The notes under the pieces were generated by a model. It saw nothing but the letters and a program-made list of their open reading frames with translations, was not told the origin of the DNA and did no database searches. The translations under genes were made by a program, and so were the position numbers. DNA of 64,000 bases from NCBI GenBank assembly GCA_011109175.1, contig RDEW01000035.1, positions 448,902-512,901 on the forward strand, written 5' to 3'. Numbering within the stretch: the first letter of the stretch is position 1; every line of letters starts with the position of its first letter. Positions 8,812-63,556 of the stretch are shown one piece after another. The DNA is from Dicyema japonicum (taxonomy: Eukaryota; Animalia; Dicyemida).

Positions 8812-9434
8812 CGAGCGTATGAACACTCTCACGGAAGATCATGAGGCATATGCAATCAGATTCCACATCCATCCCCAGTCTCCTTTTAAAGGAGGCGACG
8901 GTGAGAAATGGCCAGGGCTTCCTACGTATGTGCAATGAGCTAGAGACCAATTCAGAGATATTGTGGTTCATGTGGAGGAATTCAAATCGGTATTAAAAAT
9001 CTGCACTACAATAGAATTCCTCTGCAGAAATAAAAGAAGACACTTCAGAAATGCTGTTAGTTCACAGGCAGAGAATTCGAAGAGAATTCGAAAAATGTTG
9101 GAGGCTGGGATCACTTAATTTAGCAAGTTAATTCTTTCTTTCTCAGTGGTCTTGGGGTTTTTAAATAAAAATAATAAATAAAATTAATAAGGAAATATTA
9201 ATATTCATAAACAACGTGTTGTTGCGAATATGCCATTAATGCCGCTCGTTCCTTTGTGAACTATTGTAGAGGATAACCCTGGGATTGTTGTGAAGCTGTA
9301 CGTTTCCAACCCCTTCAATTCGGTGAGAAGGGACAATTTTGAGGAGAGTCCCAAGAATTATCCACATTACGAACATCGCATACGGTACTACAACCCATCT
9401 TGTTATTAGTGATGTCATTAGACACTAAAATTTC

Positions 9435-9785
9435 CACGTGGCGCCATGTGGTGTTTCGTGGCTAATTGATTAAAGTTGTCTGTTTTGTTCTCTGTTCCTA
9501 ATTCACTTAATTAGCATGCTTCATGTGGTTCACCTTGTCTGGTGGCGTCAGATACAAGTCAAAATGTATCCAAAAAGAACCATTTGTCAACGACCATCCA
9601 GAGAGTTCCCCCTGGACGGCTCTTCCTACACTTTTCCGGTGAAGACTCGTCATGTCAGAAGAATGCGGAGGAACGCAGTCGGAACACTGAGAAAAGTGCG
9701 GAGACTGTTGAGAGAGGCTGGGATCACCTGAAATTTGGTTATTTTGGAAAAATAGGTGGTTTTGGTTCAATAAATTAAATAAAAA
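9435..9785 (+). mobile_element. SINE-like element, copy A
   Basis: Head CACGTGGCGCCATGTGGTGTTTCGTGGCTAATTG; LINE-like 3' end (..REAGIT*) with stem-loop and AATAAA tail. Confidence 0.75.
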
Positions 9786-9901
9786 GTTAAATTGAATTTT
9801 CGACTGGGATCCAACAAGGTGATCCTCTTGGTCCGCTTCTTTTTTGCTTTGACAATGGATGAGGTTTCCCTTTCATGTGTGACGGATTTCAATCGTTGGT
9901 A

Positions 9902-11243
9902 GAGTGAAGTCCCTCTAATTAGCCAACCCTTAGATTGGCCAATTCTCAAATGGCTAAAAGTTGTTCAAAAAAGCCAATTTCCTAAGAAATTGGCCACATA
10001 TTATTAAAAACATAAAATTTATTCTTACTAATCTTTTTCAATTATTTTATTAAAAAATTAAAATTTCAAACTAAAACTTTTACAATGTGTTCGAAAGCTT
10101 CAAGGCTTAAATGTTACCAAAAACTCGAAATTTTGAGATATAAAAATGAGAATAATACAACATCGTGCCAAACAATCGCTCACGGTTTTTCTGATTAGTA
10201 TCAAACTAAGGTTGTTGAATGGATGGATTCGTTGGAATCTGAGGGTATTTTTAAGTTGTTTTATGTGTTTTTTTTAATGATGCACTAATATCAAATAAAG
10301 CACAAAATATTGTCGAAAAGTTATCAATTAGTGATTTCAAGAATTCAAAAGGATTTTTTTAAGCACTACCGCGTTGCCATAAGCACGTAAAATACATAAG
10401 GTTTCGCTCGTGCAGAACACACACTTTTTTTAAGAAAGAACAGTTATTATAACTAATCGTAGAGGGAGAACAAAAGAATACTCTTCACTAACAGCAGCAG
10501 ACCTATGACCTAAGCCATTTTGCCCGACACATAACCACTATGGCTCAAAAGGATTTCTCACAAGATTCAAAAAAGACATGGTTTTAAATTACATGGGGAA
10601 ATGATAACTGACAAACAACCTGACCTTGAAGGATTTGTAGATCACTTTGAGAAAATTTCCAAAGATTATAAAAAAGACGAAATTTACAATTTGGTCGAGA
10701 CAGAGATTTATTATAAACTGATTCCGTCTAAGAGCATATGCAAAACACGATTTGGCGGATATAAAAATTATTTATTAGCCACGTGGCGCTATGTGGTGCT
10801 TCGTGGCTAATTGGTTGAAGTTTCAGTTTTGTTCGTTTGTTCCTCCTATTTCTTCCTATCAGAGTGGCGTCATGTGATCCACCTGTCTAGGTACCGCCCA
10901 GTGCCAGGCTGGCATGAAAAAGGATCATTTGCTTTTTCACTCCACTGGAGGGGTTTCCACAACTGCAACTATGGACGTCTTTTTCCTTTTATGCTGATTC
11001 CGGATGGACTCTGTAGAAGTGGAAACTGGATACACTTAATTAGTTGTTTACTTTAACTTCTTTCTCGGTGTATCCGGGGTTAATAAATAATAATAATAAG
11101 ATCGGGTTTCTATTATATTATGTACAATATGACTGGAGCCCATAAATTAAAGCACGTTATGATTTTAAAATCTAAAGTACTAAGATGTTACAAATTCCAA
11201 AATTACCCAAATTGGCCACAAATAGTTGAGGGACAATTTTGGG
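9902..11243 (+). mobile_element. pogo/Tigger-like transposon remnant
   Basis: Flanked by TA with degenerate GTCCCTC TIR cores. Peptides IYNLVETEIYYKLIP and DRVSIILCTNMTGAHKLK match the DDE_1 family. Confidence 0.65.
10780..11099 (+). mobile_element. SINE-like element, copy B1
   Basis: Same head as copy A; close match to 41501-41805; terminal stem CTGGATACAC/GTGTATCCGG; (TAA)n tail. Confidence 0.8.
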
Positions 11244-11739: not shown

Positions 11740-12265
11740 AGTAGCAGTTAACAACTGGCTGCTCTCATAATTGAAACGTATTAGTTTGTAATATGATTCC
11801 CTCTTCAGTTTATAGACGCGCGCCTTCATGTCCAGGTGATTCGAGAACTTTTTTGCTTTAAATATTATTTTAATTTAAATGCACGAGTTTGCCGTTTTGG
11901 TGGAGAAACTTCGTGTGCCGCCTGAGATACGAGCTATTCAGCATTCTCTTACACCTAGTTGCAAGGTGATCGACGGTCTCTTTACTTAGTTACAATATCC
12001 GCACTTAGTTTCTCCGTTATCAAAAAATATGTTACGATTCTTAAGTAGACACAGCCTTCCCTCGGTTATAGGGGAGTGATTTCCATGCACTAGCATTCAG
12101 AGGATTCAGCAATATTCACTTCTGTGTCTTTCAAACACTGAAATAAAGTAAAGTGAGCGGTTTCTTCTCAATTTTCCCAGTAGATATTCGTGTTATATTT
12201 CCATCAATTTCGACAAGTCTTTCATATATTTAGTGTTGTACTTTCGGGAAATGAATTCTACGATA
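11740..12265 (-). mobile_element. R4-like LINE fragment
   Basis: Shares 343 bp with 2308-2650 and continues into an RRH..HL motif on the minus strand. Confidence 0.75.
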
Positions 12266-12279
12266 GTGGCCATGTGTGT

Positions 12280-12430
12280 TTATTTGAATTAATAATAACA
12301 CAAGAGACCACGGTTACACAAACTAACTAATCACGTGATCCTAGCACGCTCTAGCAGGGACCTCATCTTGGCCGATGCTCTTCCCTCGACCCCACTAAGC
12401 ACGTATCAATCGAATGACTGGGTCTTCGCA
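12280..12430 (-). mobile_element. LINE 3' end fragment
   Basis: Homologous to 56000-56130; GGATCACG-TGA followed by a CGTGGTC arm. Confidence 0.7.
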
Positions 12431-13499: not shown

Positions 13500-13890
13500 T
13501 TTTATGATTCCCCGATTCCCATTAAGAAGACCCTTTCAATCCTTGGAGTCATCCTGGATCTTCTATAATTCACTCATCAAGTGAACCTAGTAATCCCGAG
13601 GATCCGAAAGAAATTTGGAATTTTCAGGGTATTTACGAACTCCCCAGTATCTTCCCGACCATCGTTAAAGCTTTTCTTAAGATGGCAAAGTTCCCTAATC
13701 ATCCCCTCGGGCCGGACATCAAAACTATATATGGACGCCTGTACGAGATATGAGAACAAACCTTCCCCTTTGTAGAGATTAATCCAGGACTCCAAAACTA
13801 ACCACAGGAGAAAGCCAGATATGGACACCGGGATCACCTAACTTAAAGATCACTTTTTGTCCTCGTGATTCCAGGGTTAATAAATTAAAT
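13500..13890 (+). mobile_element. LINE 3' end fragment
   Basis: LSILGVILD RT-thumb motif; ends ..DTGIT* with a stem-loop and AATAAA. Confidence 0.75.
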
Positions 13891-13915
13891 TTAGCCTAAG
13901 CAGCAAATGTCTCTA

Positions 13916-15526
13916 TACCATTTCAGGTTTAAAGTGGGTCTTACCAAAAGCAAAGTGGTCTTACCAAAAGCAAAGTGGTACTTACCAAAAGCAAAGTGGT
14001 CTTACCAAAAGCAAAGTGGTACTTACCAAAATCAAAGTGGAACAAAAATTATTTTTTTGTTATAGGATGAAGATTAATTTCAATTGCAAAAGTTCGAGAT
14101 CAATCGCAAAAGTGACAAAGCAACATGCAAAAGTGTCGAGATCAATTGCAAAAGTGACGAGATCATTTGCAAAAGTGACAAAGCAACATGCAAAACTGTC
14201 GAGATCAATTGCAAAAGTGACTAAGCAAAAACCTATATATTTGCATGTCTGCGCAAATATTTCATTTTTTTATTCATTGCTCAAATAAAAAAGTCTGAAG
14301 CTGAAATTAAGAAAAATCTTATTATCGGGGCTTATGAGGGAGATGGTGACTGGAGGAAACTTGCAAAATCTCTCGATGTTCCGAAAACTACTACTTATCG
14401 TTGGTTGAAAAACAAAAACAAACCTGATCAGCGAGGGGGATCAAAAGCAAAAAAATTTCTTGATAAACATAAAGATTATTGTGTTGAACAGCTCGAAATT
14501 AACCCTAGGATTACTCTTGAGACCTTGAGAATTCTTTTAAATTCTAATTTCAGCTTAAATGTTTCAAAAGAAACCATTCGAGTCCACTTGGACGGTGCCT
14601 GTTATTCTTTGAAAGATATCAGGTATGAACCAGAGAAAGGCAATAGTGAATTAAATAAAGAAAAAAGAAAAAAATTTATAACTTCATTATTGGAATATCA
14701 ATCGGAGGAAATTCCAATATTATTTATGGATGAAACAAATATAAACATGCACATATCCCGTAAAAAGGGTCGATCAAAAAAAGGAACAAGGGCTAATGTC
14801 GTTGCAACAAGTTCGCGAGGTGCCAATGTACATTTCATTGGTTGCATCGGGTCCCTTGGATTGTTGCATTATGAATTCAAACGTGGATCCTTTAATAAAG
14901 AATCCGCCCATGAATGGGTGAGAATTTGTCTACGAAAAGCCAGGGAAGTTTACAATTTTCCAGTAGTGCTAGTAGTAGACAATGCTCCATGCCATTCAGG
15001 AATTGAAGAAATTGTCAGAGATAATGAATTCATCGGAAATAAAATTTTAAGATTGGGTCCCTATAGCCCTATGCTCAACCCAATTGAGAATATTTGGTCA
15101 GTTTTCAAAGCTGATGTAAAAAGACACATTGCTACAGATATGAAAAATATTTTGAATGGTGTGAGACAAGAAGCTTTGTCAACTACGGAGTTTCGACTTC
15201 AAAAGTTAGAAGAAAGTATGATTAATTCATTATGTATAATCACTCCATCTTTATGCAACACCGTAATTGCTAGAATTCAGAGGTTGGCCCCATCGGTGTT
15301 AAATAATGATGACATGGTTTATTAAATAATTTTTGTTCCACTTTGCTTTTGGTAAGTTCCACTTTGCTTTTGGTAAGTTCCACTTTGCTTTTGGTAAGTT
15401 CCACTTTGCTTTTGGTAAGTACCACTTTGCTTTTGGTAAGTACCACTTTGCTTTTGTAAGTACCACTTTGCTTTTGGTAAGACCCACTTTGCTTTTGGTA
15501 AGACCCACTTTAAACCTGAAATGGTA
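13916..15526 (+). mobile_element. Tc1/IS630-family DNA transposon with tandem-repeat TIRs
   Basis: TA-flanked. TIR TACCATTTCAGGTTTAAAGTGGG plus 21-bp units; left TIR 13916-14054, right TIR 15324-15526. Inserted into a LINE RT remnant. Confidence 0.95.
14290..15325 (+). CDS. DD35E transposase (start codon unresolved)
   Basis: Motifs FMDET, VVDNAPCH and YSPMLNPIE with 35 residues between D and E. An N-terminal HTH (WRKLAKSLDVPKTTTYRW) is in frame upstream of 14405. Confidence 0.9.
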
Positions 15527-15528
15527 TA

Positions 15529-16450
15529 GTATGCTCCATTGACATACAGGTCTTTGATTTAGTCCCAAGGAAATTAGTTATGAGGAAAATCTTTGTCTCA
15601 GACATTTAAAACAAATTGAAAGTTTGGATTGCAATCTGTCACTGAATTTCTGACATACGGAATCTTACAAGGATTTCCTTAGTCATTTTGTTCAACCTTT
15701 TCCTGAACGAACCTAGACGTAGATACACTGGTACTTGTATACGCTATAATCATCGCAGCAAGAGACCAGGGCGTTCACACTGTGGTTGTGAGTATACAAG
15801 ATATACTAGACCACCTGAGTAGTTGGCTTATTAGGAACCTATTATACACAAGCCCTAAAATCTCATGTACGATGACTTTTACTTAAAATAGAAGACTAAC
15901 TGACTCTGGATAGCTCTTAACCCTTAATGGATATTTAATCCCTTCCACTAACTCCGTTAAGTTATTGGGTAACACGAAAGATTCCCTCATAAAATTCAGT
16001 AAGCACGTTAAAAACATCATCTCGCGCCCCAACAAAAACTGAACTTCTTTGACATTACAAAAGCAGCTTCAACTCGACGTTAAGATCACTTTATAATACA
16101 ACCAAAACTCAGCTATGGCTGGGCTGGATAGGTACAAAACTGTACAAATATTGATAAGATATAAGGAAGATCGATGTCTTTAAAGCAACTGTCATGAGGA
16201 TTCTACAAAGGTTCTCCATTTGATGTTGAGACCAACTCCTTTTGAGGCTTTTGTGAGTAGAATTGGAGCCCTAATGGCACCTCGTAAGTTCTATCGCCTT
16301 GTTCACTACAGGACGTAGTATGATTCGATTTTTCAGGTGGCGCCCAGTGCTAAGTTAGCATGGAAAAAATCATTTGCTATCCCCACTCATGGATGGGTTC
16401 CAACAACATGAAACACTGGACGATTTTTTTTCTTCTGAATGAAAATATGT
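15529..16450 (+). mobile_element. Degraded LINE RT fragment
   Basis: SIDIQVFDLV (LDIxKAFD-like), a PQG-like motif and YADD-like remnants. Confidence 0.55.
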
Positions 16451-19909: not shown

Positions 19910-21639
19910 TGAATTATTCGAATTCGTCCACCGTGTTTGATTCCTTCGAATGGATTCCCTCGGTTTTATCGTACCCGATGTCTACAATAAATAAACTGGC
20001 CCAACCAGATCGGAATGAAGTTTTCTGTACTGAAACAATGCGTCATTGAATTTATTCCGGGAGACAAAAAAGTTGTGATTTTCTGTGGTTCTATCGTCAA
20101 ATGTTTTATTCTAATGATTTGAGAACATTGGTTACGTTGATTAGGTCTTTTATGTCGTCATTAACTATAAATTTATTTTGATTCAAAAAATTGATTTTCT
20201 TATTCATATTTGTCTTTTCGCATATTTTTAGCGGAATGAAATTTTTATTTTCGTCTAAAAGATTAGATAAGAAAAGTGGTTTATTTATCAGCAGTCTCGT
20301 GAATAATACCTCTATTTGAGTGGGGACTGTTGGACCGTCCTGAGGTATTGGGCTCACAGTTGATACTAATGATTCTGTCTTTGTTTGGATTTTGAGTGTA
20401 TTTAACAGCTGCAGCATACGATTGAATAAATCGATTATTATTGTCCATCCTCAGACGTTTTAATAATTGACCAGAAACTTAACCAAAATGACGTACTATC
20501 CATTTAAAAGCAAGCCGTATTGCTTGGCGACAATGAGAGGTCAGCCACAGCTATTACAATTAATCACGATTCAAATTAAGTTGACGTTTATTATATGGAA
20601 TACTGACGATTTCTATGAATCGATCATAATAAGGACGTACTCAATATATTTCATGATTTACGCCCCTTCATTTAACAATTTATGTTGCGTGATCATTAAT
20701 ATATAATCAGATTTTATTGATTTTTATATATGACAATTGACTCTTAAATATCACTCAATAGTTTTAGTCAGTCAATTCTCCCCATTTATACTCCATTAAG
20801 ACAGTTTTAGCATTTATGAAAGAATCACTTAGCAATGTGGATAGTGTGATATTTCTTAATAAATATATTTAAAATCTACTCAAATGAGTCGACAGTTAAG
20901 TATATACAGTTCCCACGGTTCCACAGGGACACGTTTTTCACAGTTATGGGAACTAGTAAAGGAAAGAGCAAGTAAAGCAAGGGAAGGCATATGATCCTTT
21001 TTGAAGCTGTCCTTTCAATGAGCGCTTTCAGATCACCCATTGTGGAAGCCTTCCGTTTTAATAGGGAAGAGAAGGATCCTTTATTGATGTCGATCAGGTG
21101 CTGGGGGTCTCCTGAATCAGATGGATCCCATGACGTCTTAGGGACTGAAGAAGGCAAAAAGTAGAAAGATATTATTTGACAAATGAATCGAACCCACAGC
21201 TAATCGCTACTCGAGTCACACCACTAACCACTACGCTATCTGGTCAACAACCTGGTTATCTGATTGACCTTGATTTAATATTTTTAATTTCAGCACTAGT
21301 AATGTTTCCATTACTCATCTCAGCTTAAGCAAAACTCACTTTATTTAAGAAGTAAGGAACATTTTTGCTAAATAATCCAAGACCTTGAAGGCTTTCTTAA
21401 CTTGTTCTTTTTTTGTGTGTGAGTCACTTAACAATCCGGTTCTTCAGTGATGAATTACTAACGACGGCCTCATTCGTCAATCCCAAAAGCATCGTAGATG
21501 CATGGAAGCTTTAATCGGAATGGACAGCAGCGAGATTTGAATCCGGAACCATCAGTAAGTGGTCTGGCACTTAATACAATTTATTTATCATTACTCCTTT
21601 TTTAGTGTTTCCTTTTTTCAGGGTTATATAATAATTTAT

Positions 21640-22000
21640 TTATTTAACTCCAAAACCACCAAGAAAGATAGGTCAAAACTAACTAATTAGGTGATCCCAG
21701 CCTCCAACAACATCCGAACTCTCTTCGTCTGGTCTTCTGATGACCCAACCACATTCCGGAAGCGCTTTCTCTTTATTCTGCATAGGAATTCAATCGGCGT
21801 GCACTTTTTTACAACCGACCGAAATTCCTCTGCATGGACAACCTTTCCCTTGAATGGGTTTTCCAGTCCTTGCAAAAACGTAGGAAACCCTGGCCATTTC
21901 TCACCGTCGCCTCCTCTGAAAGCAGACTGGGAACGGATGTGGAGTCTGATTGTATGCGCCTCATGATCTTCCGGACAACATTACCCACCACCAACAAAAT
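21640..22000 (-). mobile_element. LINE 3' end fragment
   Basis: Same family as 8821-9190 and 42250-42520; ends ..RMLLEAGIT* with the stem-loop. Confidence 0.8.
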
Positions 22001-22136
22001 AATAATAATTTAGGGCATTTGTGAAAACTAAAATGATTAAAAACGATAAAATAAAATGTAAAAAATAATATTTAATATAAAAAGTATATTATTAATAATT
22101 AAATAATAATATTTTAGGCGGGAAAACAATTTTGAT

Positions 22137-32440: not shown

Positions 32441-32614
32441 CTTATAATTTAATTTTTTAACGTCTTGGAAAAAACAGCACACGACAGCTTATGACAAAGG
32501 CTCTCACCCAATTGGGGATTGCAGTCGTCTAAAGGTTTCATTAAAGCGGTGGTTCACCCATTTGTGAAGAAAGGTAATTTTACCACGTGATTACATCCAT
32601 TCTGATTAATTACT

Positions 32615-32870
32615 CACGTGGCGCCATGTGGCTAATTGGTTGAAAATTTATCTTCCTTCTTATAATGGCGTCATTGGAACAACCTAACTAAGGAGACACC
32701 CAATGCCTGACCGACATACAAAAGGATCCAATTATTCATTCCACTGGAGACAATTTCTGGATTCTACCTCATCTTCCTGGACAAGGTCTTCGGAATCACT
32801 GTTCTCGAATGCATCAGGATCAAGGAATTAGTTAGTTTGGTTTTACTCTTGGTTTTGGAACAATTTTATT
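32615..32870 (+). mobile_element. SINE-like element, copy C
   Basis: Head CACGTGGCGCCATGTGGCTAATTGGTTGAA; body aligns with copy B; stem CAGGATCAAG/CTTGGTTTTG. Confidence 0.7.
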
Positions 32871-33049
32871 TTGTTTATCTTTGAATATTTTTAATTAAAG
32901 TAATATTTAAAAATTGTACGACATTGGAATCACAACCCATCATTTAAATTAAGTCCTCTTAAGAAAATTGAACAAATGTGAATATAATCTGACCACTACT
33001 ATTCATAGATTATATATTTGATTTAACACGAAAATTTATTTTATAATAT

Positions 33050-37502: not shown

Positions 37503-38769
37503 ACGAAACATAATTAACTTTGAATTAATAAATTTATTAATAAAATAAAACAATAAATAAATATTGTATGGTTGGCACAAACGGGACCTTGGTTAATATA
37601 ACGTTCTCTCGTTCTGTGAAAGTGCTATTCTTGGTTGAAATGGTGACGTGGTTCTTGAATTATTATGTCTATTTTACACATGTCGAATGATTTCTTTACA
37701 CTGGATCATTCAACGTTCGAGGATTGAAAGGAAAACATAAAAGGGAGCATTTAATAAGTGACTCAACATCATATAGAGTTACTATATGCAGTATACAGGA
37801 GACTAAAGTAAAGGATGTTGCTGAAGAGAATTACGGAGAGTTTAGACTTATACTACTAGACTCCGAATTCAACCACTACGGACTTGGCTTTGCTATACAT
37901 CAATGTCTTGATGGGAGAATCCACAGAGTGTGGAGGGTGAATAACAGAATAGCAGTACTCCAGATTAAGAGTGGGAGGACTGATAATTCCTTTATATGCA
38001 TAATTAATGTCTACGCACCCACAATGGCGAGGGTTTCTACAAATCCGGATGAACTTGATCTGTTTTATATGTTACTAACGGATACCATCTCTGATCTCTA
38101 AAGCTCGTTTATGACCTTTTTGTGTGAAGACTGGAATGCTAAAGTGGGACACTGTACATGGAGAGAACCCTGTATGGGTAGGCATGCCAGGGGGAGGAGG
38201 AATATGTCAGGAACATCGCTCGTGCAATTTTGTAACATGTAATTCTGCATTCGATCATAATGCGAGGCATAAGACTACGTTGACTGGACTCAATAAGATA
38301 TTTGAGACGCATTCTCCCTTGAAACTTGGTGATAGAATTTTGGTTCCTCTGCATAAACCAGGAAAGAGCAAGGGACCGATAAAAATATGAGACCTGTGAT
38401 ATTACTGGATATATTGACGAAGATACTATCTCTGATAACCCTTAGTCGGATATCTTCTGATGCTTGTGAATTTTTGTTGCTGGGACAGAGTGGGTTCAGA
38501 AAGGGACGCTCGACAGCAGATGCTGTTTGGTCCCACAGGTGGATATGTGTCATGTGTCAACGATACAGAAGTGATTTTAAGATTTTGGGAGTGGACATGT
38601 CAGTGCGTTTGACACTGTCAACAGAAAAACATTGTTGGACGTTGCTGGGAGTTTCCTTGATGAGGATAACACAAGACTTGTCCGTTTCCTATTATTTAAC
38701 ACTGAATTAATTGTACAAGTTGGGAACACAACATCGAAGCCTTTCGTGACAACAGTTAGAATACCTCTG

Positions 38770-41390
38770 TTTCGGGAAGAGAAACCACAAGGTGATCGAA
38801 CTCCAAGAGAGGCTTTTGGAAATTTTTCTAAAGAATGTGCCAATATGGATTGAGGAAGACGAACTTATGGCTTACATGAAAGTAATTATTCCAACCACTG
38901 AGTCGGTGAGACGTACTGTAAGGAATGAAAGAAAACTCACTGTTGTAAAGATGAGCTTAAAGTCAAGGGCAGAAGCTACGTCCTTGATACGCCTGGGTCT
39001 TGTCAAAGACCACCCAAAATGCTTTAATTGTCAATATTTCGGACACATTGCAAGACATTGCAATGGGCAAAGAGATGTTTCTTCTGTGGAGGACCACATA
39101 GTTCCCGGAGTGCCCAGAACCGAACAATAGAAGATCCTGTATCAACTGCGGGTCTGGTGATCACAGAACGAGTTATGGTGGTTGTCCGGTGACCAGGGAA
39201 GCCGTGGCCTCCACAGGAAGAGAAACCGAATGTCATGGGTTAGGAACATGGAGGAGAGGAGAAAATCCTTCTCCGCCACGTTACCTATATACGAAGTCTA
39301 GTGAAAACAAGCAGGACGACATAATAAAAAATCAACCTCTAAAATACGATATTATGAATCCAACACAGAAAAGGCCAATTGTGGATAAAGAACACCTGGA
39401 GGATAAGCTAAAAAGGTCCTGCTAGGAATTTATGCCGGGGACATCTGAAAAGACAATCGAGAGAACTTAAATATGTGATTAACCGTCTAAACGAAGAGTG
39501 TGATAAGGTAAACTTGGATGTACAGCAAGCGGTGGCTCTGGTCCTGAAGAGATCATGCCGCTAAGACCAGTGATCCAAAACATAAAGATCATGTTCGTTA
39601 ATGCCCGATCAATCCTGATGAGGCATCACGAGCTAGCTTCCCTGGCGAATGCCGAGGAAGCTGATATAATAATTGTCAACGAAACGAAAGATGAAGTCAA
39701 ATGAGAATACAGTACTCCCGGGTTTTGAATCGATATCTTTATACTGGAAAGAGGGGGCTATACAAGGGACTGGGAACATCAATTTTTATCGGTGTCATCT
39801 AAAGACAAGGAATCCGAGATTTATTTCATGAATTTGTTGTGAGTTTGTCGCCATTGATGTTCGTTCTGTCGACGGTCGGCTCGCAATTGGCAGTATTCCA
39901 AATCCTTGGGGAAATGTACCAGAGATATCTCCCAGTTCTTCAATGAAAACCCGATGGCCATACTGGAAGGTGATCCCAACTCCAAAAGCAAATCCTTTGG
40001 CTGCAAAAAGAGTAACAGGTATGGCAAGCTCTTGATGAAGCTATCTAAAGGCCTAGGAGTAAAAGTCCTTACATCGAAAGACGCTAGGATGTTCAAAGAA
40101 GGCCCGGAAATTTGATTCGAAGTTCTCAAAGATATGTTTAACGCATGCATCAAAATTGGTCATCTTGCACACGAATGGAAGAAGACTATTGTACGGATAA
40201 TAGCGAAAACAGGAAGACCAAAGAATGATCCTGCTAACTACCGCCCGATCAGCCTGATTCGGTCAATTTCAAAAATTATGGAAAAAATTGTCTTCTGGAG
40301 ACTTACAAATCAGCTGGAAAAAGAAGACTACTTCAGAAGTGATCAATTTGGTTTTCGCCCAGGACGATCATGCGGTGATTGCCTATTTCATATCAACTCT
40401 TAGTTATGCAAAGCCAGAGAATCCAAATGTCTCTTGAATGTCATATGTCTCGACATATCAAAAGCATTTGACAGTGTTAACCACAGAGCCATAATTGGTC
40501 AGTTATCTAGGACTGGGAGCCCAAAGGAACTAGTGAATTGGGTGAAAGTGTACCTAAAAGGAAGAAAATCCTATGTTAGATGCGGACGCTATTTTTCAAA
40601 TATTATATTATTGAAGAGAGGAGTCCCACAAGGATCAATTTTGAGCCCTCTATTGTTTAATGTTCTAATGGTTTCCAGTCTCCGTCTACACCAAATACGT
40701 GATCTCTGATATACGCAGACGACGTGCTATTGTCTGATGTGTCGAGATCGAACATGATCTCAGAGAGGAGACTCAATGTGTACATAGAAGAGATACAAGA
40801 CTGGTGCAGTCTTTATAGGTTAAAACTGTCAGAAGAAAAATCTAGTGCAATGATGTTCTTCGGTCAGAATGGTAAAGGAATTCAGAATGACTCCGTATGC
40901 GGAATCAACATTGTGAGCTCCCTGAAGTACTTCGGAACAGCTTTTGAGAAATCTGGGAGCATATTGTGCAATTTTAAACTCAAAAGGAAGAATGCCCACT
41001 ATGCGATATTGTGTATGAAGAAATCGAAACTCGAAATGGATATGTTTTTATTTATTTTTTCACATAAGATCATTCCATCATTCCTTTATGGAATGGAAGG
41101 ATGGTATTACATTGCATATAAAGAGCGTTTTATCTTTCTTCTTGAAAAATCGAGAAGAGTAGGGATCAAGATTGCCTACACAAAAAGCTCGACGAGAAGC
41201 TAGATGAAGATGAAAATTTGCTAGTAATGTCGATAAGAGATGCAGCAGAAAAAAGGATGGAAAACTACCTAAAAAGAGATGCCATCATTGACTCGTATGT
41301 TGCAGCACAGAATAAACGATAAAAATGGTCTGAGAGCGCAGAGAAGGTCCAAGCGTTTGCAGGACTTGCGGCATGAGACCAAATAACTCC
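38770..41390 (+). mobile_element. I/Jockey-like LINE (ORF1 plus ORF2), decayed
   Basis: Knuckles CFNCQYFGHIARHC and CINCGSGDH; APE FVNARSI; RT NYRPISLI, LDISKAFD, GVPQGSILSPLLF and YADD. Confidence 0.85.
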
Positions 41391-41500
41391 ATCTTTAATT
41401 TTCCCTTGCAAATAAAGCTGTTAAAGTTAAAACAACTCGGGTAAATGGGGGTCACAGAGCTAGAGCTTATGAAAATAGATATTTTTCATCGAAAACAATT

Positions 41501-41805
41501 TTATTTATTAACCCCGGATACACCGAGAAAGAAGTTAAAGTAAACAACTAATTAAGTGTATCCAGTTTCCACTTCTACAGAGTCCATCCAGAATCAGCAT
41601 AAAGGGTAAAAGACGTCCATACTTGCAGTTGTGGAAACCCCTCCAATGGAGTGGGAAAAGCAAATGATCCTTTTCATGCAAGCCTGGCACTGGGTGGCAC
41701 CTAGACAGGTGGATCACATGACGCCACTCTAATAGGAAGAGAGAGGAGTAACAGACGATCAAACAGAAACTTGAACCAATTAGCCGCGAAGCAGCACATG
41801 GTGCC
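41501..41805 (-). mobile_element. SINE-like element, copy B2, with 12-bp TSD
   Basis: TSD TCGAAAACAATT at 41489-41500 and 41806-41817; interrupts the RTE FHRKQLR codons. Confidence 0.9.
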
Positions 41806-42249
41806 TCGAAAACAATTACGCAATTTAATGGGCCTAGGTTAGCCCAAGAAGATTTCAAATAAGAAATTATACTCTGTGGCACAATAAGCATCGACATAAT
41901 TGAATCAAGATGGAGACTATTTGGGGACGTGTTTAGAATGAACATAATCGCCCCTGCAAATATAATAATTGACAATTACTTTAACAATGAGACAAACCAT
42001 CGTTCAGAGAAAAACCCAGACTCACTCTATCCGTAACTCTGAACAAGGATCTTAATGGAATTGGAAGAAAACTTAAATCTGCAGAAGATCTAGAAGATCT
42101 ACGGACAGATGCGCAAAGCAGAGGCCTAATAAAGCAAATCTCAAAACGTGTGGCACAAAAGGGACCTTAGTTAATATAACGTTCTTTGGTTCTGTGAAAG
42201 TGCTTTTAATAATAATGATGGTTGAGTTAGTGATGCGACTCGGTTTCAC

Positions 42250-42520
42250 AGAGTTGAGAAATGGCCAGGGCATCCTACGTATCTGCAATGAGCTAGGAAA
42301 CCCATTCAGAGAAAAGGTGGGCCATGCAGAGGAATTCAGATCGATCTAAAGAAGTGTACTCCGATAGAATTTTTCTGCAGACACAAAAGAAAGCATTTCC
42401 AGACGGCAGTTGGGTCTCTGGCGGAACATTCAAGAAGACTTCGGGAGATGTTGGAGGCTAGGATAACTTAATTAGTGGATTAATCTTTTTTGTGGTCTTG
42501 GGGTTTTAAAATAAATAAAT
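42250..42520 (+). mobile_element. LINE 3' end fragment
   Basis: Homologous to 8900-9160; ends with the stem-loop and an AATAAA tail. Confidence 0.8.
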
Positions 42521-42589
42521 TGCACAAAGTCTTAGCACATATTAACTTACAATAAATAATTTTAAATAAATCTTATTTTTTTAATCAGT

Positions 42590-46150: not shown

Positions 46151-46224
46151 ACAGTAAAATTGTTAACTCGAAAACTTTTTAATTTAAAACAATCTGTGAC
46201 TTTTCCAAAGAGGCTCATTATTTT

Positions 46225-46620
46225 AAATTAATTAAATTGTTCCAAAGACCAAGGGTAAACCAAACTAACTTATTCGGTGATCCTAACGCGTTCCAGTAGA
46301 GATTTCATCCAAGAATAACTATCAAGAGAGCATTTTACAGATAGTTGAGGACATTGTTCTGAGTGAGTTAACTCTTATTAAAGCTCTACATATTGTCGAA
46401 TTGTAGAAGAAAACATAAAATAAATCTGAAATCGAATTGTAGTTGACCCAATTAACTTCCATTAAACTCGATAATTTGCTACCTTTTTTATTCTTTTGAA
46501 TTTTTATGGCTCACGAGGATCTCCTATTCGTGAGAACTTTGATTACCATGACGACTCAAGAATTCCAGCCATACAAACGCAAGGGAACAAGACAGAACAT
46601 ACACAAATCCTCTGGTAGGA
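46225..46620 (-). mobile_element. LINE/SINE 3' end fragment
   Basis: AGGATCA..TGGTCTT stem; tail resembles that of copy C at 32815-32870. Confidence 0.55.
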
Positions 46621-47056: not shown

Positions 47057-48700
47057 ATGACAACGGTAATATTCATTAACCTAATTTAAATATAAGTAAC
47101 GAAACTTATAACATTATTGATGGATGAGGAAAACTGATTTTAGATTTTAAAAAAATTGAAATAAATGAAGCTCCTATATTATCACCAGTTTCTGTCCAAA
47201 TATTATCAAGGGATTATATAACTCTCACCAAAGTTACGGATATGCCGACAGTAAAGATTTATGTGATTATTAAAGGTTGAAGAACTACAACAAATTTTGC
47301 ATAGTTTGCCAGAACAAAACACAGAAATTCTTATAGAAAGCATAGAAAAAATCTTATTATGTTTGACTGATGAAAATCCCCCTATCCAGACAATTTTGGA
47401 GTCAAATTCTCTTAAAGTTATAATTCAGTGCACTTCTCGATTTGACTCACCAACTCTACAATACCAGGCACTTTGTGCGGTGTCGAATCTGGTTCCAAGC
47501 TTTTCCGAGAATCAACATAGCGTCATTGATATCGATATTATCCAGAATTTGACCTCTTTACTTGACTCACAAGACTTGAGATTGAAAAATCAGGCTCTTT
47601 GGACTTTAGGAAATATTTGTGGTGGCCATGTATTTAATCTTTAGGAAGCATCTTGAAGTATATGGACTTTAGTATTTCTTCGAAAATTCAAGAACCATTG
47701 TTAAAATTAATTTCACGAACCACAGACGGTATTATGTTATTTCTTAATTAGAATCCACAATAAGATTGCTGCATGGGTGTTTCATAATTATTACATGAAA
47801 CATCAAATGGATATGAAAGAATTTATTAATTTATGCGGTCCAGCGATAAAGATTATGCTGTCTATGGATGACTCAATTGTGGTTTTGTATAGTCTAATGG
47901 TAATGTCCGACAAATGTTTGAAAAATCAATCTTACTTAGACTCTTTGTCGAATATGGTTAGCAGTCATTAGAATTTGTGCAGATCTCTTATCCAGGATTC
48001 TTGTTTGGTTAATTCCTTAATATGAATATGTTAAACAATATTATCAATTAATAATATGCAATATTATGATGAGCTAATAAGTATTTTAATTATTAATTTA
48101 GATTTTTGTCGATAACGGAATTTTATTAACATTAAAGAAAATCATCGAACTAGAATACACAGAGTTGTTTCCTGATTTATTCGGATTCATTCATGAAATT
48201 GCTCACTATGATGAAAATGTTATTATTATATACGAAACTGAACTCTTCAAAAAGTCATATGAACAACTGATATCAGTGAATTTGGTATTAAATGTAGGTA
48301 GATAATAATATCACTTTAATAATATTAAATATGATGGAAGTTGTTTTGGATAAATCTTCACCTTTATATGAATGCTATTTTGATATTAACGGATTGATCG
48401 AAATTTTCACGGAAATATTGAGGAGAGACGACGACATTTTTGTCGTATTTCAGACATTGGTCTGTGTTTTGAGTTTTATATACATTTTTAATCCAACACT
48501 TGTCATGTAAATTTAGATCCTCGTGCTTATAATTTAATGAAAAAAGTGGAAGATTGTCAATATTATTGTGATATGGATGTCAGAATGAAAGCTAGAGAAA
48601 TTATTTATTCTTCGTCTTTTAAGGTTTTCAATTTACTCACTTTTAGTTATATTTTGAAAATTTTCAGTATGACTATTATTTGAAAAAAGTTATTAATTAA
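47057..48700 (+). CDS. Importin alpha (ARM repeats), divergent; start approximate
   Basis: NPPIQTIL, TLQYQALCAVSNL, QALWTLGNICG and AAWVFHN; 23-25 nt introns; one -1 indel near 47765. Confidence 0.8.
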
Positions 48701-53700: not shown

Positions 53701-53739
53701 TTAATTCAGTTCATGTCTGGATTTATGTATTTAACCCTG

Positions 53740-54879: not shown

Positions 54880-55180
54880 CGTTTTGCTTTTTCATGTCCT
54901 CACTCTTTCTAATAGCGAACACGGTTTCTTCATTTTTTTCGAGGATTCAACTTTTATGTTTACTTGTATGCAAGAAAGTCGATTATTTAAAAAGTTTCCC
55001 TCCCCAATCGGATTTTTCTGCAGGAATGAGAAAAAGCTTTTTCATATGGTAGTTGTAACAATGAAGACCACAGACGTGGATGCCGCAGTTGATTACGGGA
55101 ACTGGAATTACCTAACTGTTTGACGTTTTTTTCTTTTTCTTTCTCGGTGATCCCGAGGTTCTAAATAATAATAACAAAAA
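54880..55180 (+). mobile_element. LINE 3' end fragment
   Basis: Ends ..GTGIT* with a stem-loop and (TAA)n tail. Confidence 0.7.
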
Positions 55181-55994
55181 TTTTTAAGGATTCGACAAAA
55201 ATCTTAAAATCCTGTAAACAAGTCTTTCATTAATGTGGTGGTAAGCATACCATATTTACTCATTGATGTTATAACTGACATATTTATGATTATTATGGCT
55301 CCTACTAGAATGTAGGAAGAGGATCCTGAAACAGCTCTTCCACTTCTTGGTATTGAGGATACTTAAAATCCGACCTCATTATTAGTTTTAAGATGTTACT
55401 TTATCAAAAAATACTGGAAATTTTTTTTGTTCTCTCTGTGGAAAGACTAGCTTTGTGAGGTAGTGTGGGTTGACAATCAAAGTCATGAGTCAACAAACCA
55501 TATTAAGTCCTGCCAATTCTCTCAACAGCATTCGTGAATCTTAATGTTTTTGATTTTTGGAAAACTCAATATGAGTTCCATATCGTCCAAAATTAGAAAA
55601 GTGGTCCTTTTTCATCATTACTACTTACCCCTTCATGGAAGATTCGAAATAATATCCCCAAACATAATAAAAAGTTATTTTAAAATGGGAAGCAGAAAAT
55701 ACACACTAAATTAATAGACGAGGCACATTAGAAGTTTTTAGCTGGAAATTCGCATGCTGGTTGAAAACCCCTTATAAGTCTGTTATGTATAAAAAACTAA
55801 GAATGTCTCAAACAAACTAAGTGATTTTAACTTCTAGTGTCACGAATTTCTTCGGAGGAACTCAATTGGAGTGAACTTCTCCAAAACTGATCGGAATCCT
55901 TTGGCATAAACAACCCTCCCCAAATGGGTCCCTTAGTTCTGACCAACACATATTAACCTCTACCATTGCCCCTAGACGTGACCCCCACGCGGAC

Positions 55995-56140
55995 ATAACA
56001 CTAGAGGACCACGTTACACAAACTAACTAATCACGTGATCCCACCACGCTCTAGCAGGGACCTCATTTTGGCCCGATGATCCTCCCTCGACCCCACACAA
56101 GCACGTATCGGTCGAGTGACTTGACCTACGCAGTCACAAC
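55995..56140 (-). mobile_element. LINE 3' end fragment
   Basis: Homologous to 12280-12430. Confidence 0.7.
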
Positions 56141-56409
56141 GGCGCGTTCCATGGTTCATTCTAATCAAGGCTTCAAGAGGCATTGGCGGCTAGAGCTTTC
56201 CAGAAATCTGGCGTTTCGTGATTTTAGGCTCTTTTCCGGATACATATGTCAAAAATTAGCATAATTATGAATAATATTAAAAATAAATTAACAAAGAAAA
56301 AAATTAATTAAAAAAGAATCATTATTCAAAAGGCTGAGATTCCTCGAGTCTGTCGAGATTTGAAAATTCCCATTTATCGCTAATCCCCCTAAATATAGTT
56401 AAACATAAA

Positions 56410-57179: not shown

Positions 57180-58399
57180 CTGATTTTATAATAAATAGGT
57201 TAATAACAAATATTTATTAACTAATTTAAAAATTTTATTTTTTTATAAAATTTTCACAAAATAATAATAAAACTATTATTCCTGGTGGGGTCGAGGAAGG
57301 AGTATGGGGCTAAGTTGAGATCTCTGCTTGACCTTCTGGTATCAAGTGATTAATTATTTTTGTGCTACAGTGGTCTTTGGTATTTTTATAGCTCTTTGTT
57401 TCTATTAATTTATGCCGGCCTGACTGCGTGCCAAAAATGGAAGGCTGATATGATTAAAAAAGTTGATCAATGAAAATGAGTTAATTTAATTTTTTATGAA
57501 GACTTTCTGCTGATGAAAAGCCAATGGCGTGTCATGATTGTAGACAGTTAGTTACAAGGGGGAACGGGGATTAGGTATTTTGTGCGTAAGATTATCCCGA
57601 GAAGGATATATCTGTGTATGCGTCACGGAAGAATTTTCATATGTTAATTCAAACTTAGCATTGAATCGGAGATCACTTTACACTTATAATTGAATCGGAT
57701 TCGTTATAGGGTTTCCGCACCAATTGCGTCACATTTCTATTCAATAGCAGATAAAATTTTTTTTAAGGGTAAAAACAAAAAAACCAAAAAATTGTGATGT
57801 GGCCGACGGTTATGAAGATCTATCTTGAACATTTGTTTAGAGTAATAGCCGAGTGACCATATACACAACACTTGTGTTTCTGTTCTGTGTTAAGTTTTGT
57901 TTTATTTTCACCACCACGAAAACTCGTAGTAAGAACACCCTGTTAAAAAATTCAAAAATAATTTTTGAAAACTAGTTAGTGGAAGATTAATCACCGAGAA
58001 ATAGTCATATTGCCACGACCACTTTTGTCTTGTTCGATTATCAACTTTCTCAACTCGTCAGCAATGCTGAAAAAAAACCAAACCTTGCTTTCCTATGAAG
58101 ACGACATTGTGGTCGCATTGAGGGATGAAAATTTAATAAATGCTGTCACTTCATTTTTTGTCAACTTTTTATACCTTTAGATCGACAATTTAATTTTTTT
58201 ATTTAATTGACTTTTTAAGGTCATTTTTTGATTTTAAATAACATGAAAATAAAATCTTTCAGAAAAAAACCCAAAAATCTTGGCTGTAATCTTCAAAATC
58301 CATTTAACTTTTTTCCCGCATGTCGAGAATGTGATCTTAACTTGCAAGAAGAAGCTTGAAGGCTCTTTTGTGGACCTTCAAAGGACTGAATCGATTGGA

Positions 58400-58740
58400 T
58401 GTTCTTTACCGACAATACATTGAACCTATAGAGTTATGTTTGTATTGTTTGGGGAAGAAACCAGGTACTTAAAAATATAATGTTCAAGCAAAAGCAAAAA
58501 ATGCTGAATCCCTTATCAAGGAACGTTGAACTCAGAAGCTTTGAAGAATTCGTCAAGGCGCTTGGAGCAGATTTTGTGAAAAAAACCTGTCAAAAGGGAC
58601 CTTCGTCTTATACGAAAATGTGTCGGAACGCAGTCTAAACGCCAGGACAAATGCGAAGATTGTTGAGGGAGGCAGGGATCACCTATAATAATTTTTCTTT
58701 TTCTTTGGTAACGGTGATTACTGGTTTATAAATAAATTAT
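58400..58740 (+). mobile_element. LINE 3' end fragment related to the tail of SINE copy A
   Basis: GGAACGCAGTC..TGCGAAGATTGTTGAGGGAGGCAGGGATCACC aligns with 9670-9728. Confidence 0.7.
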
Positions 58741-61468
58741 TTCCAGGTATAGCTCTCATTCAGCCTTCTCTTTTCTCGGTTGTCAAAGAATCGTCAAGGA
58801 TTCGACTTGGACAATCTTGGAGATGAAAATAATCAACGTAGCAACATGACGTGCAGCCACAATTATATTAATTTAAGTGTACTTATCTGTCATGAAAACT
58901 GAGAATAGAAAAGATCCCGGATTTAGTAAATCTGGTCCCCGACTTACAGAGGTTGAAAATTTGCTTTTGCAAAACAAAGCACAACTAATACTTCGAATGC
59001 GTTTGCGTGGAGTCTTTAGACGTTTCTAATGATGTTCTCTCTTGATTGGAGAATCACATCCTTGAGACATTTTGCTAGCTCTTTGAGTAGTAAGCCTTTG
59101 TAAATTATCCTCCTGTTCTTTAGTGACTTCATTCATTTATCCTTCCCCAATAACAAATCTCCTTCCCGGTTTATTAAATTAGTGTTTCAAGGTTTTTGAG
59201 ATATTTTCTTAAGTTTGACCGTTTTTCGATAATCTTTCTTTGAAGGAACATGCAGCCTTCTTACAATTTAATGTCCTCTTACATTATTCTGTAGGATAGT
59301 GCACTGACCAAATTCTTCGATTTCCAATTCGTCGAAAAAACCATTATTTTTTCCTGATGAAAATCTAGTGGTTCATGACTAGAGTTAGTCTATCCCTTTT
59401 ATCGAAATAAGTCCGAGTAAGGCAATGTTAGCGAAGGTGAATGTATGGTCGGGAGATGTTGTACTGTCATTGGCTCTTTAATTCGTTCCTCTATTCGTCA
59501 ATGAGTCGTTTAAAATTATTCCTCACTTCCAATAATTTCCACCCTCATGTCTTCTTGTTGATTCTTAAACCAGGCCGGATGCTTCCCGTTCGGAATTTTT
59601 GAGATCCGCACGAGAGAATATCTTGGATAACGTTCCTGGAGGAGTATGTAAATATTCACATCGTGACGACTCCAATGTTCTTCGGACAGTACCTCGTTAT
59701 CATATCTGATGTTCACTGTATAAAAGACCCTCTTCCTGGTAAGGAATATAAACCTGATCAACTAAATAGAACTTAGCGTACACATTTATGATGGTGGATA
59801 TCTCAATTTTAAGGTCGACTGAACCTAGATCCTTCCAACATCACTTGTCTCGGATAAAACAAATAATATAAGTATAAAATTTCCATGATGTACAATTTGG
59901 TATTACTATTACTCCGACTACAAAGGAGCACGTAATTTTGAAGTGAGCTTACGACATTTTGAATTTTGTTAATTCATACTCATTCGTGAAGTGTCTTAGT
60001 AATTCCAACAACTCAGAATCATTCGAGTGGGAAATAAGCCTGTCTGAGAGACTCTTCACGTTCGTGCAAATCATCACATCTAGAAACAAATAATTTCTAA
60101 AGATCCGGGATTTTTAGACAAATTCTCAAGGCTACTACATTTTCAATAACTCTGGATATATTTAAATATGTTTTATCCGGCTACCAAGGTTGGATAGGGA
60201 TGTATTTTTTCTCAGTATCCTTTCCAAGTATTCACAATTATGGGAACCCCTCCACTACAGTAATGAAGAGAAGGATCCTTTTTGATGCCGTCTAGCTACA
60301 AGTGACTAATCACTACGTACCTGTTCATTCTATTTAGGTGACATCCCACGAAAAGATTTTTGTCTTTGGATCCCTTTTTATGAGAACCACGTATTTTTTC
60401 TCATTACTCTGATTACTCTTCTTTGAGGACGTGAGGAATGAATAAGATTGGTCGTCTTCCTGATGAATTCAAGCGAATCTAGATTAATGGATAAATAAAT
60501 TTAATCCTCTGGAATCCCTAACTCGTAAAAACCGTCATAAAGTTAATTTGGTCCTTCTTCCAAATACCGACTTTGCGAACTGATACTCAAACCATCCCGT
60601 GATTAGTTTTTTTGGTTTTACGCGGTTCTTGGATTTTTTATTTCATTTTTTTAATGTTGTAATTTTTATTATAAAAAGTCCCATATAATTGGTTATTTTA
60701 AATTATTTGTTGTTGGTTGACATGAAGCATGGGTCGGGAGACGCCTCAGTGAAGGAGACGATGTGGATGGACTATGGGAGCTTGCTTATGACAAGGAAAG
60801 TGGAGAAATATGACTGTTGTTAATTTCTCAAGTTGCACGTGCTTTTCTCATTACCAAGATCGTAAATTCGAACGAAAATTAATTTTTGTGAATTTTTAGT
60901 TACAATTTTAAATTCGACGTTATTTAATAAACTTGATGTTGTTTTCCATTTTGTAATAGAAAAATAACTTTTAACTAATTAATTCTGAGTTGTTGAAATT
61001 AATTAATTAAAAAATTATTGACAGAAAATCAAGATTCCATATACTTCTTAATTCCGCATAAATCGTTACTGAAATACATTTTGAATATGCTACCAGCCTC
61101 TTCTACTGCAAAATAAGTTTCTTCTGCCCACTTTTTAATTTATACATCAATAATAACTGATAATTTGCTATGTGGTTCATTTCGATAGATTGCCTCCAAG
61201 CATCTTTCAATTTAAATTCAATTTTCGTCAAAACTCAGTTATTTTTTGCTTAAAAAAATTTTACAATAATATTCAACAATTCCTTCTGGTCATTAGGTAA
61301 ATAGTCAATTTCAATAAATTTTTATCTTTAGCAAGAAGAAGATCAACATCGTTAAAATATCTCTGATTTTTAGATAACAGTTGTTAAGTTTTGAAAATGT
61401 TTAACTTATGCAAGAAAATCATATTCGACTAAGCATTAGTAACCTTGTTGATCATAGAGTCTGTAGAT

Positions 61469-63556
61469 CAGTGTTTCTTAACGTGGTCCCCAGAAATATT
61501 TTTAGGTCAATTAATTTTTATGACTAAAAAAATTATTTAATTTTTGTTATTTATTTTCATTAGAATATTTAATTAATTTTATTCCACGTGTTTTTTTGTT
61601 ATTTGATTGTAATGGTTAATTATCACAACTCTTCAATCTCTACATATACCACCTGCCACAAACCTTTAATGAAAACTGTCTAATCTCTCCTAAGCCAACG
61701 ACATCATTCTTGCTCCAAGAACAGAAGCATTCAATCAGCGACTCAGTCCGCTCAACAAATGCTTGACAAGCTGGAACTATGGCTCTCGAAGCGAAGACTC
61801 GACACATCAGCAGCAAAGTCCTTTGTCACACTGTTTACCACCTACAAAAGACAGCTCTGTATCGAACCAAAAGTCTTTATGAAGAACGAAGCTATCTCTA
61901 TTAACAAAACACCGAAGATTCTGGAGTAACCTTTGATCAGGGACTCACCTTTATCCGGCATGTTGAAAACAACGTAACTTCTGCTCTGAAGAAAATGAGA
62001 ATTTTAAAAGTGCTCTCAAAAACACTTAGAGACCAAACTGGTGGCCTTGCCACAATTTATGAACAATTTATCCGACCAACGATGACACATGCAAGTCCTT
62101 CATGGCCAATACAGATCTCCCTCATTGAAACTATCCGCAATCGAGGAGACTGCAATAAGGTTAATTGGACCAGAACACAAAATCCAACCCATTGAAAACC
62201 TCTTAATCGAATACAACGGAAACTCTTAAAGGAGGCTAGTCTACCGAGCTGCCCTCTATTCCATACACTATCGAAATATCTACAATCATACAGAAATTTT
62301 GAGCCGATGCCATGTCCAATGAGAAGAGCTGTTCAGGATTCTCAACCCCGCCGGACTCGTCCTCTCCCTTGTCGGTCTGGGATCACTTAGTTAGATGAGA
62401 ACTTTTATTTCTTTTTCTTTGACCCAGTGATCCTGGGGGTAATAATAATAATAATGGTTAATCGCAAATGGATTGATTCTTATGTCCAATATGGATTTAC
62501 CCAATATACTGGATCTGACAACGTCGATAAAGCGCAGTGTATAAATGCGACGTCATAATGGGAAACATCTCTTTGAAGCCGTCACAATTAAAAAAGACAT
62601 AAGGAAAAAACTCACCCACAAAATGTTGACACTGTCGAAAGTTTTATAGCAAAAAGAACTAAATATAATAAATCTGGAAAACTTAGTAATTTCGGATTTA
62701 GACCTTCATATGAGGTATTAATAATTGAAGCATTTATTTTGGATATCCCTAATTATTGCCAAAAACAAAGTATCTCACTCTTCTGGAGAAAATTTAATAA
62801 AACCTGCCGACAATGGCAAGAATATTGCTCGATAAAGATGCCGTACAAAAATTTAAAAATGTACCTTTATCTAATGACACGAATCGAATACGAGACATGT
62901 TTTGTAATGTTTTGGAACAACTCGTTATGAAAATAAAGCCATGCAGAATTAGTATACAATTGGATGAATCTACCGATATAACATATATAAATCAGTTGGT
63001 TGCATTTGTTCGTTTTGTCGACATGGAATCTATTTATGACGAGCTTTTATTTTGTTTGGAATTAACTGCAAGAACAACAGCTAATGGTATTTTTGATTTG
63101 TTTTCTGGTTTCTTACGTGACAATTGTATTCACTGGGATAAAGTTGGATCTATTTGTACAGATGGGTCACCAGTTTTGCAAGTTGACATTTAATTCGCTT
63201 TCGATTATGGAATTCTGTTATTAATGAATATCCAATCTTAAGTAAAAATGCACTGGAAGTGATAATTCCTTTCCAACCACTTATTTATGTGAAATGGCAA
63301 TGTCTTGTTATTCTGAAAAATAAAGTTCGCAACCGATTTAAAGTGGAAGACGATATGAGAATGGCACTTACCAACATTGTACCAAAAATTGAACAGCTAG
63401 TTTCTGAAAAGCAGGATAAAAAATCATACTAACTCTAAATAATATGATTTTTTAATTTTGTTAGTTTTTTTATTAAATTGTTTTGTCACATGTGGTCCCC
63501 AGAAAAATTCAACAGACTAAAGTGATCCCCGGTCAAAAAAAGGTTAAGAAACACTG
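61469..63556 (+). mobile_element. hAT (Buster/Charlie-like) transposon with broken transposase
   Basis: 8-bp TSD CTGTAGAT at 61461-68 and 63557-64; TIR CAGTGTTTCTTAAC; peptides SIQLDESTD, LVAFVRFV and SICTDG. Confidence 0.93.
61621..62451 (+). mobile_element. 5'-truncated LINE inserted at the hAT transposase start
   Basis: 11-bp TSD TAATGGTTAAT at 61610-20 and 62452-62; LGVTFD and YEQFIRP motifs; stem-loop and (TAA)n tail. Confidence 0.9.

Follow-up and report, generated by a model that had tools for sequence, protein, structure and literature searches.

The window analysed here, 64 kb of Dicyema japonicum DNA (contig RDEW01000035.1, positions 448,902 to 512,901), is AT-rich animal DNA with 35% GC, which contains host exons (Ank/SH3, laminin-G-like, abhydrolase) and is also rich in transposon remnants. 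A first-pass annotation had described in it at least 14 divergent ends of long and short interspersed nuclear elements (LINEs and SINEs), each carrying a stem-loop that would join the stop codon of the second open reading frame (ORF2) to the 3' end of the element. On re-check, all arm coordinates and sequences cited for these ends were exact, and the hairpin was the minimum free energy (MFE) fold in most copies (RNAfold). Fourteen sites were indeed found; they fall into about 7 families, named A to G here, and several are sister copies. The layout was common to all 14 sites: a 5' arm resembling CTGGGATCAC(N), the stop region, a U-rich loop and a complementary 3' arm. In most copies the 3' arm is followed by GG(G)TT and then by an A/T tail of TAA or TAAA units, a repeat which is not clear in C2 and in both D copies. 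The tails and modules are as follows.

9099..9178, + strand: A1, LINE 3' module; 5' arm 9105-9115 CTGGGATCACT, TAA 9116-9118, 3' arm 9145-9155, 11/11 pairs; GGGGTT, then a (TAAA/TAA)-type repeat
21627..21706, − strand: A2, LINE 3' module; 5' arm 21700-21690, TAA 21689-21687, 3' arm 21660-21650, 11/11 pairs
42452..42524, + strand: A3, LINE 3' module, decayed; CTAGGATAACT / TGTGGTCTTGG, 9/11 pairs
11020..11100, + strand: B1 tail; 5' arm 11026-11036 CTGGATACACT, TAA, 3' arm 11067-11077 GGTGTATCCGG
41491..41571, − strand: B2 tail; 5' arm 41565-41555, 3' arm 41524-41514
12275..12350, − strand: C1 tail; 5' arm 12344-12334, TGA, stem of about 8 bp GGATCACG/CGTGGTCT
55975..56050, − strand: C2 tail; GGGATCACG / CGTGGTCCT, 9 bp; A/T tail not retained
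32808..32881, + strand: D1 tail, SINE-like element; CAGGATCAAG / CTTGGTTTTG, 10 bp including 4 G-U; GIT frame without a stop
46219..46292, − strand: D2 tail; about 7 bp plus 2 past a bulge; reading ..RITE*
9712..9785, + strand: E1 tail, SINE-like element; 5' arm 9718-9728, TGA 9729-9731, 3' arm 9755-9765, stem of 12-14 bp
58667..58745, + strand: E2 tail; CAGGGATCACC / GGTGATTACTG, 10/11 pairs; stop mutated to TAT
62371..62455, + strand: F1, LINE 3' module; 5' arm 62377-62387, TAG 62388-62390, 3' arm 62426-62436, (TAA)5 tail
55096..55178, + strand: F2 tail; CTGGAATTACC / GGTGATCCCGAG, 10 pairs, one mismatch, one bulge; hairpin not the MFE fold
13822..13893, + strand: G, LINE 3' module; 5' arm 13828-13838, TAA 13839-13841, 3' arm about 13865-13875, one bulge

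Searches of the 64 kb were carried out on both strands, filters off, with a covariance model built on an 11-bp stem (R1). All 14 sites were recovered, with E values of 5e-7 to 9e-15, and the next match was at E=0.22. Since such a model matches its own seeds by construction, a second, leave-family-out model (R2), restricted to families A, E, F and G, was made. Both family B copies were detected with it at E=1e-10 and C1 at 8e-4, C2 being marginal (0.13). The module is common to at least families A, B, C, E, F and G. Two extra candidates, at 48574 and 57336, were scored by R1 at E=0.2-0.3, and neither folds better than shuffled sequences. The second of them, 57336-57390 (CTGGTATCAAGTGA...CAGTGGTCTTTGG, E=0.28), is a possible fifteenth copy of the module, heavily decayed.

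Pairing and covariation in the stem

In a structure-blind MAFFT alignment of the 14 ends, 87% of the stem cells are standard pairs, compared to 34-52% when the partner is slid by 1 to 3 columns. Both sides have changed in 7 of the 11 pairs, and the observed values are reached by at most 1 in 500 column shuffles. A model-fitted alignment gave the same counts, the observed values being reached by 0-2 in 500 shuffles over both alignments. As relatedness among copies can inflate pairing and covariation numbers, a tree-aware null was built, in which the parsimony changes of each stem column were re-placed on random branches of a FastTree tree. The paired fraction observed, 0.87, exceeds the 0.71 (+/−0.06) of this null (P=0.0006), as do the 7 pairs changed on both sides (2.5+/−1.3 expected, P=0.002). 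The proposal that the arms change together was thus kept under tree correction for the 14 ends of the window. Family B illustrates it at the sequence level, with GGATAC/GTATCC where others have GGGATC/GATCCC or GGTCTT, three adjacent pairs being changed on both sides; pair 17 is found as U-A, C-G, G-C or U-G across copies.

About a quarter of the paired cells are G-U. Summed over the 14 copies, the MFE is −189.9 kcal/mol for the sense strand and −106.7 kcal/mol for the antisense strand, the sense fold being the stronger in 13 of the 14 (for F1, the MFE is −22.9, z −3.9). The use of G-U pairs together with the weakness of the antisense folds indicates that the structure belongs to the sense RNA and not to DNA, in agreement with the RNA structure first proposed. 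Stems are 8-12 bp long and close U-rich loops of 22-38 nt; a miRNA-like precursor was ruled out, stems being just 8-12 bp.

Identity between families stays at the random level (0.25) until 30 nt before the arm, then rises to 0.70 in the 5' arm, and is 0.58 at the loop start and 0.52 in the 3' arm. Loops and upstream sequence had both been said to diverge. This is correct for the upstream sequence; the loop does not diverge throughout, its 5' end keeping a T(A/G)ATTAGTTAG-like sequence. That loop start (UUAGUUAG) directly adjoins the 5' arm, for instance at 21689-21679 (− strand), 12333-12323 (− strand) and 62388-62399. In 4 of the 14 copies it brings stops in all three frames over a span of 18 nt, in most others it does so in two frames, and it is kept across families, non-coding ones included.

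Coding overlap and SINE-like elements

A stop directly follows the arm, after an ACN codon, in 11 of the 14 copies, with TAA, TGA and TAG interchanging. The exceptions are 58673 (TAT), 46286 on the minus strand (stop one codon later) and 32814 (stop in another frame). In the LINEs the 5' arm reads GGG AUC ACN (Gly-Ile-Thr), and the stop is the first triplet of the loop. Of the 14 ends, half represent non-coding tails or are too short to judge an ORF; coding sequence was analysed in the following remnants.

6100..7164, + strand: reverse-transcriptase (RT) part, frames with Pfam RVT_1 (E=2e-12)
8802..9104, + strand: family A C-terminal coding remnant (A1), ...MLEAGIT*; third-position excess
21707..22010, − strand: A2, remnant of family A coding sequence, 97 codons without a stop, GIT at the end
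42225..42451, + strand: A3, remnant of family A coding sequence, 59 codons without a stop, ...MLEARIT at the end
61650..62370, + strand: family F LINE coding remnant (F1), about 250 codons in one frame, 3 stops, no frameshift, ending GIT*
13500..13821, + strand: G, remnant of LINE coding sequence with the thumb region (...LGVILD..FTHQ...), GIT* frame

Three copies of family A are present, at 8802-9178 (+), 21627-22010 (−) and 42225-42524 (+). They are 74-76% identical and stop-free over 59-97 codons in the Gly-Ile-Thr-stop frame. Of the 55 minimal substitution steps counted over their 40 terminal codons, 30 are third-position changes in this frame (P=0.001); with the arm excluded, the count is 28 of 52. 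Such an excess marks a frame that was translated when the ancestors of family A were active. Further upstream, indels leave the frame ambiguous between copies, and for that reason C-terminal motifs of the RW.GH..RM and GRP types, considered as clade markers for family A, were dropped. The RT fragment at 6100-7164 and A1 (8802-9178) are probably parts of the same family A LINE, split by a DNA transposon with inverted ends of about 90 bp. This transposon (7165-8801), inserted in the family A LINE, has terminal inverted repeats (7165-7250 and 8716-8801) that are 98.8% identical, and a 230-aa ORF on its minus strand (7658-8350) with no Pfam match.

In F1, the frame runs from the RT end through the thumb GVTFDQGLTFIRH and the C-terminus to the stop at 62390, and in G (13500-13841) about 110 codons are continuous in frame from the thumb to GIT*. 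The overlap of the arm with the coding frame, another of the initial claims, is therefore established for family A by the third-position excess and for families F and G by frame continuity with the RT thumb. In these LINEs, which are those that can be judged, the hairpin starts inside ORF2, and no 3' untranslated region precedes it. The structure may also fix the ORF2 C-terminus, as first proposed; however, the conservation of the 5' arm, which exceeds that of any other block between families (0.70 versus 0.25 upstream), needs no coding constraint, because G/U-rich 5' arms tolerate transitions in the 3' arm.

Four of the ends are borne by non-coding SINE-like elements of about 275-350 bp that form one superfamily: E1 (9434-9785), B1 (10779-11100), B2 (41497-41810, − strand) and D1 (32600-32881). 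They share a common head (CGTGGCTAATTGGTT) and a body of about 190 nt, and end with three different tails. The shared head and body sequence, GCCACGTGGCGC.ATGTGGTG.TTCGTGGCTAATTGG..., was seen at 9434-9620, 10779-10970, 41620-41810 (− strand) and 32600-32760. Upstream of their tails, the four elements are made as follows.

9434..9717, + strand: E1 head and body; the last 80 nt or so LINE-derived (...RRLLREAGIT*)
10779..11019, + strand: B1, shared head and body
41572..41810, − strand: B2 head and body; whole element flanked by a 12-bp target-site duplication (TSD), TCGAAAACAATT
32600..32807, + strand: D1, shared head and body

B2 is inserted in another LINE, and its 12-bp TSD directly adjoins the tail GGGGTTAATAAATAA, which fixes the 3' end of the element and shows that it was retrotransposed. 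The E1 tail still reads ...RRLLREAGIT*, and was thus taken from an A/E-type LINE including its last codons. The same tail is therefore carried by LINE fragments with RT or C-terminal coding sequence (A, F, G) and, in its A/E-type form, by the SINE-like element E1. For the tails of B and D, the window has no LINE partner. The SINE head is not tRNA-like, ARAGORN having detected no tRNA-like sequence in the window, and it has no Rfam match at E≤1. Runs of at least 4 T occur in the loop or 3' arm of several tails (families A, D and E), where they would be weak Pol III terminators; family B, the youngest SINE-like family (92% between copies), has no such runs. These T runs bear on which polymerase transcribes the elements.

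A candidate recognition signal and its rivals

The stem-loop found here is shared, lies on the sense strand, shows compensatory changes and has a fixed place before the repeat tail, on LINE fragments as well as on SINE-like elements, as the first-pass annotation had it. We give a probability of about 0.7 to the reading in which the module is the conserved 3' tail of a group of LINEs and of SINE-like elements that borrow the LINE machinery. By analogy with UnaL2 and ZfL2 (PMC1636434, PMC4176376), the hairpin may be the recognition signal for the RT. The sense RNA forms a G-U-rich stem closing a U-rich loop, followed by GGUU and by a short (UAA)n or (UAAA)n where the element ends. ORF2p would bind the hairpin, as in stringent-type LINEs, and at the nicked target the repeat tail would serve to prime reverse transcription. 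Every RNA with the module would then be copied, which would explain why one SINE-like superfamily is seen with three tail versions.

As a principle, a shared 3' stem-loop combined with a repeat tail dates back to the 1990s-2000s, and this kind of element is not new. In UnaL2, the only cis requirement is a tail of about 60 nt, made of a stem-loop and (UGUAA)n that are both needed, RT starting on the repeat by slippage (PMC1636434). Eel UnaL2 and UnaSINE1-2 (L2 clade) likewise have a module of about 60-80 nt, in which a stem-loop precedes a short terminal tandem repeat, on a LINE and its non-autonomous partners. The UnaL2 loop is GGAUA, 5 nt long, and its repeat is (TGTAA)n, whereas loops here are U-rich, 22-38 nt long, and repeats are (TAA)n or (TAAA)n; no sequence or covariance-model similarity links the two. 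Moreover, the stem described here starts within ORF2, and the stop codon is enclosed by it, which is the one unusual feature of this putative recognition stem. In ZfL2, ORF2p binds its cognate stem-loop, and stems are exchangeable as long as they are paired (PMC4176376). This pairing-dependent exchange, described for zebrafish ZfL2-1 and ZfL2-2, fits the compensatory changes observed here. ZfL2 specificity resides in the loop, whereas here conservation is found in the 5' arm and over about 10 nt at the loop start. Tail exchange among SINEs and bipartite non-autonomous derivatives of LINEs (RTE, Ingi/RIME, Vingi) have been described (Kojima 2018, PMC5786205; PMC4758252), as have mollusc short retrotransposons with LINE-derived 5' ends (PMC4758252). 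These bipartite derivatives and mollusc SINEs likewise have a common head and body with swapped LINE-derived 3' tails; the head found here, in contrast, could not be traced to a LINE, is not tRNA-like and has no Rfam match. The present hairpin is not described in either paper (PMC5786205, PMC4758252).

Several results weigh against a conserved tail used for recognition. The hairpins of F2 and A3 fold no better than shuffles. The leave-family-out model missed both family D copies (32814, + strand; 46286, − strand), and D is on that account the weakest member of the set, its sequence suggesting a more distant relative tied to C. The tree of the tree-aware null is short, poorly resolved and built partly from the stem columns themselves. 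When sister copies only were compared, the test was weak, with 3 double changes where 1.06 were expected (P=0.07), so that the support from covariation comes mainly from differences between families. No intact master copy exists in the window, every copy being shortened or decayed, and the RT fragments (RVT_1) gave no placement in a LINE clade (RTE, CR1/L2, Jockey, Ingi/Vingi). Finally, the loop is much larger than, and unlike, those of UnaL2 and ZfL2, and the module has no Rfam match.

One rival is plain shared ancestry, in which all ends would descend from one recent ancestor with an imperfect palindrome, pairing not being under selection. Several ends being sister copies, the 70% identity of the 5' arm between families and the P value of the sister-pair test all go in this direction. 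This explanation is nevertheless very improbable in our view, as pairing reaches 87% next to upstream sequences of random identity, the 3' arm remains complementary with an identity of just 52%, in family B three neighbouring pairs have changes on both sides, and the tree-aware null gives a P of about 0.001. Still less credible is an inverted repeat acting at the DNA level, as a cruciform, nuclease target or second-strand priming site: the core GGATCAC/GTGATCC is near-palindromic around GATC, as would suit such a role, but the G-U pairs that make up a quarter of the paired cells are C-A mismatches on the other strand, and antisense folds are far weaker.

A role in translation or 3'-end processing, where the hairpin would tune termination or ORF2 output, or the stem and AATAAA would set the transcript end, is unlikely as the explanation of the module, although less so than the two preceding ones. 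It would account for the stop at the stem/loop junction in 11 of the 14 copies, for GGTTAATAAA with a canonical AATAAA hexamer after the stem in many copies, and for the stops in two or three frames provided by T(A/G)ATTAGTTAG. Yet the hairpin and its compensatory changes are kept in the non-coding SINE-like elements (B, D, E1), where translation cannot maintain it, and the elements end inside the repeat itself, beside the TSD. Such a role could coexist with recognition by the RT. Doubtful to a similar degree is a functional position of the ORF2 stop at the stem/loop junction, by which coupling to the ribosome would yield cis-preference. On termination, the ribosome would open the hairpin, and ORF2p would be released just where the hairpin re-forms, so that the protein would capture its own RNA; untranslated SINE RNAs would keep the hairpin permanently folded, and would thus compete well. 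If this coupling were true, the double constraint of codons and pairing would explain the frozen Gly-Ile-Thr-stop in LINE lineages that are otherwise unalignable.

With the conserved LINE and SINE tail as the preferred reading, the module is a concrete candidate recognition signal for these families, and tail swapping would explain how one SINE-like superfamily moves between LINE partners. It also provides a natural case in which the last codons of a protein are the nucleotides of a putative RNA recognition stem, useful for the study of cis-preference and SINE parasitism outside vertebrates.

Database searches returned little of relevance. Rfam, including its UnaL2 LINE 3' element, gave no match at gathering score in the window, and two of the ends had no relevant match at E≤10. 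A HMMER profile of the family A C-terminus, run against 1.84 billion representative proteins, had two matches, both repetitive and unrelated. Word-based protein searches, in which the thumb piece of F1 and the RT fragment of family A were the queries, were blank within a length range that left out full-length ORF2. A pattern scan of metagenomes for GGATCACNTRATTAGTT produced at least 120 matches, which is the chance level, and model R1 on metagenomes produced none below E=0.009 and none convincing. LINEs and SINEs each make up more than 11% of the O. vulgaris genome (PMC13282606); in the literature, no description of the motif strings or of octopus LINE/SINE hairpins was found, octopus repeat papers being silent on the matter.

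Other elements of the window

A nearly full-length LINE lies at 38750-42222; its ORF1 has a CCHC knuckle, and an endonuclease and an RT with YADD are also present. This LINE, nested after the remains of an older one (37670-38700), is interrupted by the SINE-like element B2. It ends with ...AAAGGGACCTTAGTTAA...GGTTCTGTG...(TAA)3, which may be the module tail in a diverged form; this end (42150-42222) folds no better than shuffles (z −0.33). An intact-looking transposase ORF of the Tc1/mariner type (DDE_3, E=4e-21) is found at 14405-15325, flanked on both sides by arrays of a 21-bp tandem repeat (14095-14262 and 15306-15532). Lastly, a 300-nt direct repeat with 98% identity was observed between 2308-2607 and 11923-12222, 9.6 kb apart.

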